From Entomortierella parvispora E1425 (taxonomy: Eukaryota > Fungi > Mortierellomycota): a stretch of 64,000 bases of DNA. The notes under the pieces are model-generated. The model saw only the letters and a program-made list of their open reading frames with translations, searched no databases and had not been told where the DNA came from. The stretch spans positions 1,488,001 to 1,552,000 of the forward strand of contig BQFW01000014.1 in the NCBI GenBank assembly GCA_020891255.1, written 5' to 3'. Below, piece after piece: positions 55,582-59,824 of this stretch (positions are counted from its first letter, which is position 1; each line of letters begins with the position of its first letter). The translations under genes were made by a program, and so were the position numbers.

Positions 55582-57731
55582 CTAGTGCTTGGTCCCAGAA
55601 GCAGTAGACGCCGAGTAAACCTTGGGAGTCCGTTGTGGAAGCGGTGCTGTGCTACCACGGTTAGGGATCAACGGCAAGAACGCTGCCTGGGGCCGATCCG
55701 CCAGAGTCTTTGCGTCACTAAAATGTTGATAAACCTTGGATAGATATCGGACCATCAACTTTCGCATCCAAGAGTCGGTCCAACTTCCATGTCCCGAAGG
55801 TGGGGAGGACGACGTAGGAGGTGACGAGGACAAGACTGAGCTGCCAAATGGTCCAGATCCAAGAGGGGAGGATGGAGAGGTCGGCGAGGACAGTAAAACC
55901 TTGTTCACGCGATGACTGAGATCCATTTGCACTTTGGCAAATGGCAGTCGATCGGCCTGGAAGGCCTTGAAGAGCTCCACAACGTGCTCAGGTGAGGCCG
56001 AGGGCAGATCATGCAAGAGATTGGCAAGGATGACAGAATCAAGCATCGCGCTGGCTGCTCCCTGTCCGGCATTGGGCAAAAGTCCGTGGCAGGCTACATG
56101 AATAAAGAGTGATAACGATAACGTCAATAGGCTTTTCTCCTGCAAATCATCCTTCTGCCCTTTCCCCCCGTGTTCTTTACCGTCGCCAATTAGCACGGTT
56201 CTACCGTGATGCCAAGTCTCGCATAAAAACTCTTCTGAGACGGTGCGGGTTACTGACTGAGGTGGAGTGGCGTTCATCAAATCTCGGAACAAACCTCCGA
56301 TGGGCAATTTCAAGTGCTGGTACTCTTCTGATAAAAGTTCTCCGACAGTCGCCAACCCTTTGACTTTTTCTTCGGGCTCCCATCCACCAGGTATGTATGA
56401 AACGGTGGACGCATAGGACGCAGTGGTGGATGAAGACGCGTAAGACATCGTAGAAGGCGTGGGCGAGGGGGGGCGTTGTAACTGCTGTGGTTGGGCGTAA
56501 TGCTCCCTCAGAGCAGGATCCTCCAAATGCATATGGACAGTCCACGCTATCCGGTCACCAGGCAAGGTATAGTATCCAAACTATGTGCAACCGACCGTCA
56601 ACAAGGGTCAATACACAATGCATATTCATAGATCGATCGGCGGGCGAATACAGTAGCTGACTTACTGTGATATGATCGACAACAATAGTATCACAACGAC
56701 TCTCCGCATCCTGTAATCCTGGATACCGATTCCGGTCCAATGGGTCCGTGACTCCGACTAACGAGAAATGACTACCTGTAGGTTGAAAAACGCCCTCTTC
56801 TAAACCCCCATTGTCGGCGATTGAAGGGAGAGCAGAAAACAACGCAGCATCGTGGCGGGGCAATATCCCTTTCTTGGCCACCTGCTTGTACAGGCAAGTT
56901 CGTATCCTTGAGAAGGCACCGTCACTCCCAACCAGAATGTCGCCTTTGTAGGTGGTGTGATCTGCACATCGGATCTCGGCCGAATCCTTGTTTTGAGAAA
57001 AGGAAACGATTTGTTTTGAAAAGTGCACTCTTTTTGGGTCCAATTGAGAGATCAGGAGCGACAAGAGATCTGTTCTGGTCGAGACCCTAGATGCGTAACC
57101 GGTTCTAGGATGTGCAAAAAAGCAGTAAAGAGAACTCGGCATCAGTCCTGGTCCCAGTGCACAGACGACCACAGCAAGCGGGAAGCAGGCGGGATCTTCT
57201 GCCTCGAATGATCCTCCCTCCCCCTCACCCCTGCCTACATCCTGGAGAGGTGACCTCGACGGGAAGGGGAAAGAGAGCACTTCCGGACATTCTTCCACAG
57301 ACGCACACACACACACACAAAAAAACACAACATACCTATCTTTGTGATCCGAAAGGTCCAACTCCCCTATCCGCTTCAAGTTGTCTTGAACAAGGTGAAT
57401 AGTCTGGACGGGCTTTGAGATCTTGTCGACTTTGTCGAGGAGACCAAGCTGTTCTAATAGAGGAAAAATACTCGGACCAAGCACAATGGCGCTTCCTAAA
57501 CGTTTTTGACACAGACAGGTTAATCTTTTTTTACTTTTCATTTGGGTTTGCAAAGGTCGAGTTTGACAAGGGACCTTTCAGGTTGCCATGTCGTTTAGAC
57601 ATACCCAGAGGGGACACTTGGGGCGAGCTCTCAAAAAGGTCGTAGTCGATTTGTGCCTTCTCCAGAAGGATAGCGAGGGTGATGCCTCCGAGACCAGCAC
57701 CTGCGATAAGAACTTTGAAGGTAGGGGCCAT
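55582..57731 (-). CDS. FAD-dependent monooxygenase (group A flavoprotein hydroxylase), multi-exon
   Basis: KVLIAGAGLGG (GxGxxG), LVGSDGAFS (DG motif), VLIGD/ACHGLLPNAGQGA (GD motif). Confidence 0.9.
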
Positions 57732-58269
57732 AGATTTGTTTTCAGCGGTCTTGAGAAACGAGAGAGGTGTGGATGCACGAGTGTTGGTAATGTGAAAATG
57801 AATGTGGAATTGAATGCAATGCAATGCAATGCAATCGCCAAGAGAAAAAAGGAGAAAGGAAAGGAAAGAAAAGGAAAAACAACAAAGAAGGCCAAGAGAT
57901 TACATATTCAGCCGTTTGCCTCGTCCCTATGCGGGAAGCTGAAGAGGGCTTTTTTGCTTTTTTTTCGTCTTGGGGCTTTGGTGCAACGCTTCTTTTCCTT
58001 TTAAAGGTTTTTTAGCATGCGGGATTTTCAAGCAGCGAATTGCCGGCCAGAGAACGACGCGTTTTTCACTTCCGTCTTCCCACCATCGTCATTTTTCGAT
58101 CCTTTAACGAGAACAAGTGCGGATCTGGACTGCAGCTGACGCGTGCGTGATGAGGCAATTGCGACTCATGCAGGGATTGTGTTCACGTTCCGGGAAATGC
58201 TTCTCTAGTGCCATTTTTTTATTTTGTTGTGGGTTGTTCATGCTCTAGCAGCACTCTATCTCCTCCTCC

Positions 58270-59824
58270 TCAGAACCGACTGAGATTCGACTGGTCTGCG
58301 TGATATTCATCTGCAAAGGGAGACTCCGCTGCCTTCATGGAGCTCTTTTCTAGGTTGGCGACCCTTGCGCACGCATCCCAATCCAGCCATGTCGTGCAGT
58401 TGGCACATCGAACTGCGTTGATAGGGATACCCTTCAAACAATAGTCGCACTTCTTCTCTGTCACCTCTGTCTTTGTGTTTCTTCCCATTTGATAAACTAA
58501 TGAAAAATAACAAGTTGGTCATTGTTAGATACTGTGAGATGACAAAGAGACGGGGTGCGAGATGACAGACGAAGCGATAATCGTGTTTCTTACTTTTCAC
58601 AACGATAAAAACGCATCCAGAGATGATGATAAAGTTGATAACAGTCTGAACAAAGTTGCCCCAGTTCCAAGTGATGTCGCCTGCATTTTTGGCTTGGAGT
58701 CGAGTAGCGTACTATGATTTTGTCAAGGATAGTAGATCTGTCAGCTTCTTTTGCTCTCTTAGCTTGAACCGCATAAAACTGGGACATGAGGCCTTTACAT
58801 TTTCAGGAGGGTTTGCAGCGTTTCGGCGCAGGGTGATGAAGTTCTCATCCAAGTTCTTTCTCGAGGCCAGCGCAATCACTGGGGTGATGATATCGGTCAC
58901 CAAGCTTGTAACAATCTAAAAAATCCAAGTGTTGTCAGCTGTCTGTTCGAGATGATCTTTATCTACATCCTTCTCTTCACTTGTTCCAAGTCAAGGCGCT
59001 GAAAGTAGACCAACCCAGAAAAAAGACTTACAGCGGTAAAAGCAGCACCTGTTGTGGTTGACCATGATGATTGTGAGGTGGGGCAAAATAACGGGATTGA
59101 GAGCAAAAAACATAAATCAGGTCAACAACGTTTTCCTGTGGTTCTTTTTGTCCCTCCGACCGCTCTCTTTTTGTGCGTTCAGTCCTCTTTCGTCCAAATG
59201 AACGACAGCCGACAGAGGCACCGAAGGACTTACCGACAACAACGGCCACGGCCAAATCAACAACGTTGCCTCGATCCATGAACTTGCGGTAGTCTGCAAA
59301 GAATCCTGTGCCGTACCTGACCACAGCCACGTTGTTTAGCTTGGTACCCACTGCCGCCACTCCGTTCCCGGCTAGATACACAACAATAAAAGAAGACTCG
59401 TTGAGAGGCTGCAAGTCGACGACCACTTTTTTCACCTTTTTTTTTGGTATGTGTGTGATGACTCGGCCAAGACAGGCTGGCTCTTACCACGAGTGTATCC
59501 TCCCTTGACAGCCTGAGCTCCATGAGTGACTCCACCGACGACGGCCTGAGTACCGTGAGTGACTCCACCAACGACGGCCTGAGTGCCGTGGGCGATGCCT
59601 CCAACCACGGCTCTGGCGGGGTTCAAGTTCCTCTTCTTGGGCCGCGTAGGGTCCTGCTGTTTCTCAAAGCTATCGGTATAGTCCTGATGGTCGTAGGCCT
59701 GCTGCGAGTTTTGGAGAGGATGATAGTCTTCCTCTCTGTTCTGTGGACGGTAAGAGGACGAAGGAGGGGCGATTCCGCTTGGCTGTCCTCTGGCGGACTG
59801 GTCGTAGTTGTTGTAGTTGCTCAT
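58270..59824 (-). CDS. mscL: Large-conductance mechanosensitive channel MscL homolog, spliced, with N-terminal repeats and C-terminal zinc ribbon
   Basis: Spliced product [43 protein letters not shown] (S1 helix and TM1), WNWGNFVQTVINFIIISGCVFIVVK (TM2), then KKCDYCLKGIPINAVRCANCTTWL. Confidence 0.9.
59511..59609 (-). repeat. Three 33-bp tandem coding repeats (11 aa) in the MscL N-terminus
   Basis: Units 59511-59543, 59544-59576, 59577-59609 encode VVGGIAHGTQA / VVGGVTHGTQA / VVGGVTHGAQA. Confidence 0.9.

Follow-up and report, generated by a model that had tools for sequence, protein, structure and literature searches.

The locus and its gene model

We analysed a stretch of 64,000 nucleotides (nt) from the soil fungus Entomortierella parvispora E1425 (contig BQFW01000014.1, positions 1,488,001 to 1,552,000 of the forward strand), called the window below, and describe a minus-strand gene in it that encodes a large conductance mechanosensitive channel (MscL) with a predicted four-cysteine zinc ribbon in its tail. 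The gene is real, spliced in frame and already annotated as MscL. Its coding sequence of 954 nt runs from an ATG at 59824 to a TGA at 58272-58270 and encodes 317 amino acids (aa), which are residue for residue those of the GenBank protein 'large conductance mechanosensitive channel [Entomortierella parvispora]' (P0001 in our numbering). P0001 was found by a word search with the open reading frame (ORF) that contains exon 1 and was scored on the exon-1 part only, where the identity is 100%. The spliced mapping of the protein onto the window is exact and returns the identical six exons (Table 1).

The five introns are 116, 185, 116, 87 and 97 nt long and have the phases 1, 1, 0, 0 and 1. All of them use GTAAG or GTAAA donors and TAG or CAG acceptors. 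The initial annotation had described a complete MscL over five GT-AG introns at 58270-59824, and these coordinates are exact. It had also described the MscL signature as spread over all five introns, which holds for introns 2-4 within the core, whereas intron 1 lies in an N-terminal extension and intron 5 at the boundary between the second transmembrane helix (TM2) and the tail.

Table 1. Positions in the window of the MscL gene of E. parvispora and of the parts of its protein
Feature	Positions	Strand	Description
Whole MscL coding region	58270..59824	-	6 exons, 5 GT-AG introns, 317 aa; identical to GenBank P0001
Exon 1	59488..59824	-	N-terminal extension, aa 1-112 plus one base; predicted disordered, no Pfam match
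33-bp tandem repeat, exon 1	59507..59611	-	3.2 copies, 83% matches; encodes Gly-rich 11-residue AVVGG(I/V)(A/T)HG(T/A)Q
Exon 2	59234..59371	-	Rest of N-terminal extension, S1 helix, start of TM1
S1 amphipathic N-terminal helix, aa 131-145	59274..59318	-	From model and alignment to E. coli MscL
TM1 pore-lining helix, aa 149-181	58865..59264	-	Split by introns 2 and 3
Exon 3	59032..59048	-	17-nt micro-exon, (G)AAFTA of TM1; 17-nt exon also in both paralogues
Exon 4	58799..58915	-	End of TM1 and first half of extracytoplasmic loop
Exon 5	58594..58711	-	Second half of loop and most of TM2
TM2, aa 220-248	58480..58663	-	Split by intron 5
Intron 5	58497..58593	-	97 nt, phase 1, directly after TM2 '..VVK'
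Exon 6	58270..58496	-	Basic linker, zinc ribbon, extra helix, disordered end with conserved ...L(S/A/N)RF C-terminus, stop
Zinc-ribbon module, aa 257-280	58384..58455	-	KKCDYCLKGIPINAVRCANCTTWL; model pLDDT (predicted local distance difference test) about 94
Post-ribbon predicted helix, aa 282-299	58327..58380	-	DWDACARVANLEK...; Mortierellaceae-specific

The channel core

P0001 scores 111.7 bits against the Pfam family MscL (PF01741; cut-off 27.4, E = 3.7e-32) and 83 against TIGR00220 (cut-off 71), and it matches solved chains of the Escherichia coli type at E = 2.8e-13 with a gapless first transmembrane helix (TM1). The Pfam and solved-chain E-values place the family match far above chance. 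When the exons are scanned singly, exons 2, 4 and 5 match the Pfam profile colinearly at positions 1-23, 30-60 and 59-93, and they also match several NCBIfam MscL equivalogs, while exon 1 alone has no profile match.

An AlphaFold2 model of P0001 was built on an alignment of 73 relatives (A1). It contains the helix S1, two transmembrane helices and an extracytoplasmic loop with short strands between them, as expected of the family, with pLDDT values of 76-94 over residues 131-145, 149-181 and 220-248; residues 1-111 are disordered. A Foldseek search with the model returns the MscL of Mycobacterium tuberculosis (2oar) and that of Methanosarcina acetivorans (4y7k) with probability 1.00. The pore and gate motif of TM1 (E. 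coli R13-G14-N15...L19...V23...G26-A-A-F29) is present, with 17 residues aligned to E. coli without a gap. P0001 keeps the residues that correspond to E. coli L19 and V23 and has Ala in place of G22, as does the MscL of M. tuberculosis. As the gate-forming TM1 is intact, the default reading of the protein is a tension-gated pore.

The cytoplasmic C-terminal five-helix bundle of MscL is absent from P0001, which has the ribbon in that place and a different helix after it. The bundle is dispensable for gating and does not define the family, so the missing canonical helix leaves membership in MscL (TCDB 1.A.22) standing.

A predicted zinc ribbon in place of the C-terminal helix

The tail of P0001 reads CDYC-x10-CANC and thus has the spacing CxxC-x10-CxxC. 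The cysteines C259, C262, C273 and C276 are invariant in the 73 aligned relatives, and K257, A270 and T277 are conserved in at least 90%. In the model the module forms the knuckle fold of a beta-hairpin, in which residues 256-258 and 265-267 are short strands and residues 272 and 279 form bridges. P0001 and E. coli MscL share a Pro/Ala-rich linker ending in TKE, and the ribbon that follows it in P0001 takes the exact place of the E. coli C-terminal helix. The replacement of the helical bundle by a cysteine tail, as first proposed, is therefore right as to the place of the ribbon and incomplete as to the C-terminus, which consists of the ribbon and the helix of residues 282-299.

The two conserved CxxC knuckles and the modelled fold are those of a zinc ribbon, while the scores stay below the gathering thresholds of the known ribbon families. 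For the fungal tail no ribbon family is found at E <= 0.1, and exon 6 gives only faint zinc-finger noise. A bacterial tail (P0120, residues 110-143) comes closer, with 22.0 against a threshold of 25 for Zn_Ribbon_1 (PF13240), 21.9 against 27.3 for DZR (PF12773) and 24 against 28 for DUF7577. Scores just under the thresholds are probably the reason why databases annotate only the MscL domain in these proteins. Among solved structures, the zinc ribbons of RadD and RanBP2/NZF superpose on the tail with a root mean square deviation of 0.7-1.6 A over 24-27 columns in Foldseek, although with weak E-values owing to the small size of ribbons. The structural neighbours of residues 250-317 in the ESM-Atlas are DZANK/Zn_ribbon_3/DZR clusters and a bacterial MscL cluster. 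We take these structural matches as leads only. Membership in RanBP2/NZF was considered and rejected. The consensus of that family is W-x-C-x2-C-x3-N-x6-C-x2-C, and the tail has the same cysteine spacing but K/E and I/P at the Trp and Asn positions.

Behind the ribbon, the Mortierellaceae have a 'W-L-D-W-D-A-C' stretch whose cysteine, the fifth of the tail, is conserved in 55 of 94 relatives (within P0002-P0091). The C-terminus ...L-x-R-F occurs in 34 of 94 proteins and might be a sorting or binding motif.

Distribution of the ribbon-tailed subtype

In 115 of the 121 best relatives of core plus tail, a CxxC-x(6-16)-CxxC motif follows TM2. The relatives with a tail come from every listed genus of the Mortierellaceae, usually with several paralogues per genome, from Bifiguratus, from more than 12 chytrid genera and from the tardigrade Hypsibius exemplaris. 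Short proteins of 143-162 aa that begin at S1 like bacterial MscLs are found among the relatives as well.

The bacterial side was surveyed with P0120, one of these short proteins with a tail, as probe on bacterial and archaeal contigs with one genome per species. This yielded 566 confirmed relatives, and 80 loci were retained from them. The tail is present in all 78 MscL proteins that could be extracted from these loci, nearly always as CPxC-x10-CPxC-T-S-x-L. The loci span about a dozen phyla and include Chloroflexota, Acidobacteriota, Nitrospirota, Myxococcota, Thermodesulfobacteriota and Pseudomonadota, as well as Bacillota (Clostridium puniceum, Selenomonas ruminis), Gemmatimonadota, WOR-3, Omnitrophota, Zixibacteria and others. 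The statement in the initial annotation that some bacterial MscLs carry a similar cysteine tail was thus correct, and such proteins are numerous. Judged from these alignments, the four-cysteine tail of P0001 is homologous to that of many bacterial MscLs. It is no fungal invention and marks a large MscL subtype common to bacteria and early-branching fungi. The fungal sequences in the survey and in the tree described below are those of early-diverging lineages, and the counts are lower bounds for the size of the subtype.

A full-text literature search, with most subscription journals outside its reach, found no description of an MscL with a zinc-ribbon or CxxC tail, nor of the function of a fungal MscL. 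The ribbon-tailed subtype is apparently unstudied.

Paralogues, introns and descent

The E. parvispora genome holds at least three paralogues, P0001, P0010 and P0080. Their five introns agree in position and phase, and the 17-nt micro-exon is common to all three. P0010 and P0080 (annotated end at L083:4423) lie on different contigs of megabase size and have eukaryotic neighbours such as GATA and cyclin genes. Summed over exons, the proportion of synonymous differences between P0001 and P0010 is 0.74 (pS, saturated) and that of nonsynonymous differences is 0.18 (pN); for the tail exon alone the values are 0.80 and 0.17. As pN lies far below pS, both the core and the tail are under purifying selection. 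The tail exon of P0080 differs from that of P0001 by a 2-residue indel, which makes an ungapped comparison of the two invalid.

The column and phase of intron 5 (phase 1, behind the first base of the codon that follows '..VK') are common to Bifiguratus adelaidae and to the chytrid Spizellomyces punctatus, and the MscL gene of Batrachochytrium is intronless. We observed that this sole intron common to fungal phyla (A1 column 346; L081, L084) falls on the exact boundary between the core and the linker-ribbon part, and that both parts are already fused in intronless bacterial genes.

A quick maximum likelihood tree of 118 rows and 145 columns, with E. coli as outgroup, unites all sequences from eukaryotes in a single group, which lies within the bacterial ribbon-tailed MscLs and has a support of 86-94 (not starred) in the Shimodaira-Hasegawa-like approximate likelihood ratio test (SH-aLRT). 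Within this group, support is 96* for Mortierellaceae plus Bifiguratus, 90 for the chytrids and 87 for the fungi overall. The common intron 5 and the single nested group favour one old transfer from a bacterial donor into early fungi, followed by vertical descent and duplication. A phylogeny had been proposed to find the donor lineage; it nests the eukaryotic proteins among bacterial ribbon-tailed ones without singling out a donor, the sister of the group being a metagenome protein of 148 aa (P0115).

The tardigrade gene for P0109 (L085:5001-6034, on a contig of 907 kb) lies near an ANF_receptor gene and has two introns at positions that differ from the fungal ones. P0109 forms a long branch adjoining the fungal clade, and a second sequence, P0114, resembles a truncated relative. 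There may have been a separate transfer into tardigrades.

The N-terminal extension and neighbouring sequence

An N-terminal extension of 130 residues precedes the core. The Gly-rich unit of 11 residues listed in Table 1 is present three times in P0001 and twice in orthologues such as P0002 and P0005, and related 'AV.GG' motifs stand upstream of S1 in chytrids and in the tardigrade. The repeat region is disordered in the AlphaFold2 model. This long, disordered N-terminus would be a eukaryotic addition to the channel.

Directly downstream of the MscL gene we noticed an ORF at 57531-57824 on the minus strand, which opens with MAPTFKVLIAGAGLGGITLAILLEK... and resembles the dinucleotide-binding start of an FAD-dependent monooxygenase.

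Membrane topology and location

In MscL both termini are cytoplasmic, and P0001 has basic residues ahead of TM1 and behind TM2. Its first 60 residues are rich in Asn, Gln, Ser and Pro and contain acidic residues; on reading the sequence by eye, the start resembles neither a signal peptide nor a presequence. A mitochondrial presequence was rejected on this reading only.

The loop between TM1 and TM2 carries further information about location. An N-x-S/T sequon is present in the loop of 60 of the 85 Mortierellaceae proteins and of all 18 chytrid-like proteins, in comparison to 20 of 65 loci from bacterial genomes and 4 of 117 bacterial-type metagenome proteins. At least two cysteines are found in the loop of every chytrid-like protein and in none of the other three groups. 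The chytrid-like homologues (among P0093-P0113) also have a lengthened loop. These features suggest that the chytrid-like loop is disulfide-stabilised, glycosylated and extracellular, unlike that of bacterial MscLs. The enrichment of sequons and cysteine pairs in the eukaryotic relatives fits a lumenal or extracellular loop and thereby a membrane of the secretory pathway better than the mitochondrion.

Interpretation and alternative explanations

We consider it likely that P0001 is a eukaryotic MscL of the subtype in which a four-cysteine zinc ribbon has replaced the cytoplasmic C-terminal helix, and that it acts as a tension-gated channel in a membrane of the secretory pathway with the ribbon in a structural role. 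The subunits would assemble into a pentamer in the plasma membrane, the endoplasmic reticulum (ER) or the vacuole, with both termini in the cytosol. Hypo-osmotic swelling would stretch the membrane and open the gate of TM1. Five Zn(Cys)4 modules would hang below the pore and take over the job of the canonical helical bundle, where they might stabilise the assembly and pre-filter its cytoplasmic mouth. The simplest view of the ribbon is that of a Zn(Cys)4 module which has a structural role and faces the cytosol.

There are several points that weigh against this interpretation. Firstly, a search for sequencing runs listed none of RNA, and the splicing rests on homology and on a GenBank model that is itself a prediction. 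Secondly, the tree comes from a quick search on 145 columns, and its key branches are unstarred. Thirdly, the loop of P0001 lacks both sequons kept by its nearest orthologues. And lastly, the conservation of ribbon residues that are no ligands (the aromatic residue at 261, I/V-P at 266-267, A270, R272, T277 and L280) suggests a specific interaction surface, which would agree with a regulatory role no less than with a structural one.

One alternative, which is the idea of the initial annotation, is that the ribbon is a sensor and not a scaffold. If the zinc thiolates were oxidised, if zinc were lost or taken up, or if the site were a rubredoxin-like Fe(Cys)4 centre, the fold of the cytoplasmic module might change and the gating threshold shift, so that the channel would be a large pore modulated by redox state or metals. 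Four invariant cysteines directly below the pore in a cytosolic module, together with non-ligand residues conserved beyond the needs of a bare metal clip, are what such a sensor could look like. The subtype is also common in anaerobes and soil bacteria, and Zn(Cys)4 redox switches exist, as for example in Hsp33 and RsrA. However, nothing that we computed separates a switch from a structural site, and CxxC-x10-CxxC ribbons are mostly structural. Since the C-terminal domain of canonical MscL can be deleted without loss of gating, a strong allosteric link from the ribbon to the gate is not expected. On balance we regard the sensor as unlikely.

Another possibility is that the ribbon serves as a docking site, at which a protein, ubiquitin, nucleic acid or lipid head groups would tether or regulate the channel. 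This idea draws on the conserved surface and on the RanBP2/NZF fingers, which work in this way, have the same C-x2-C-x10-C-x2-C spacing and are the best small structural matches. The E-values of these matches are 0.7-4, though, and the defining Trp before the first cysteine and Asn after the second are absent. In addition the same tail is found in bacteria, which have neither ubiquitin nor Ran. We therefore think that a docking role is improbable.

A channel in an organelle of endosymbiotic origin such as the mitochondrion, or one that serves regulated lysis or cell death, has the bacterial ancestry of the MscL family in its favour and nothing else. The N-terminus is not presequence-like (by reading only), and relatives have loops whose sequons and cysteine pairs indicate a position in the ER lumen or outside the cell, so that we give this explanation very little credence. 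That the gene might not be a fungal one, but contamination, a gene of a Mortierella endosymbiont or a decaying pseudogene, could be suspected from the bacterial nature of the family and from the endobacteria that Mortierellaceae often carry, yet it can be dismissed, since five spliceosomal introns with canonical sites interrupt the gene, their positions recur in the two paralogues, which lie on other contigs of megabase size next to eukaryotic genes, and the frame is intact with pN far below pS.

The resident nuclear gene of the initial annotation is thus upheld by its conserved introns and by the setting of its paralogues. The word 'domesticated', if it implies a recent event or one special to this fungus, does not fit, because the gene is old, exists in several copies, is found widely among early-diverging fungi and brought its tail along. 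The further proposals of gating by redox state or metals, of an organellar location and of a role in regulated lysis are speculation. Nothing computed supports any of the three, and the loop sequons and cysteine pairs of relatives fit a secretory-pathway membrane instead of an organelle.

A more far-reaching idea, which we hold to be doubtful, is that the ribbon tail defines a functionally distinct class of MscL that occurs in a dozen bacterial phyla and reached early fungi by a single transfer. Channels of this class, nanometres wide, would be tuned or locked by the state of a Zn(Cys)4 or Fe(Cys)4 centre below the pore, which redox conditions or metal supply would set, and fungi would later have added the Gly-repeat N-terminus and duplicated the gene for new roles.

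The E. parvispora locus is an unexceptional, already annotated gene of an old fungal MscL clade, and the broader subtype is of moderate interest. In MscL, the textbook example of tension gating, the function of the cytoplasmic C-terminal domain remains a matter of debate. The swap of this domain for a ribbon is natural and widespread, with all four cysteines kept in every member seen, and therefore offers a ready comparison for what the domain does. The fungal clade would furthermore be a clean case of an old transfer from bacterium to fungus, after which the gene acquired introns and a new N-terminus, formed paralogues and gained sites for glycosylation.

Comparison with known systems

Fission yeast Msy1 and Msy2 are characterised fungal mechanosensitive channels of the MscS-like type. 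Channels of this type, which include the MSL of nematode-trapping fungi (PMC13463886), are probably the nearest functional analogues of P0001 in a fungal cell, but they have an unrelated fold and belong to a different family, the heptameric MscS. A knockout of an MscL-like gene of Drechslerella, unpublished and mentioned in a 2026 mBio paper, had no effect on trap formation (PMC13463886).

With the canonical bacterial MscL, as known from E. coli and M. tuberculosis (2oar), P0001 aligns over S1, the gate motif of TM1, the loop, TM2 and the basic Pro/Ala linker. It differs in having a four-cysteine ribbon instead of the C-terminal helix, an N-terminal extension of 130 residues, five introns and a longer loop.

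The MscLs of Spizellomyces, Batrachochytrium and Bifiguratus, so named in GenBank/UniProt, belong to the same ribbon-tailed subtype. Those of chytrids are shorter (about 200-235 aa) and have two loop cysteines and a sequon, and the Gly-rich repeats of 11 residues are missing from them.

The bacterial ribbon-tailed MscLs, as found in Clostridium puniceum (L077), in Selenomonas ruminis (L066) and in many Anaerolineae, Acidobacteriota, Nitrospirota, Myxococcota and WOR-3, have the architecture of P0001 and share with it the tail consensus TK-C-P-[YF]-C-x3-[IV]-P-x2-A-[TV]-R-C-P-x-C-T-S-x-L. As extracted, they are 141-175 aa long, start at S1 and mostly end at most about 10 residues past the ribbon. 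In comparison to them, P0001 adds the N-terminal extension, the post-ribbon helix and the tail behind it, and the Mortierellaceae proteins have Asp in place of the Pro of the first knuckle.

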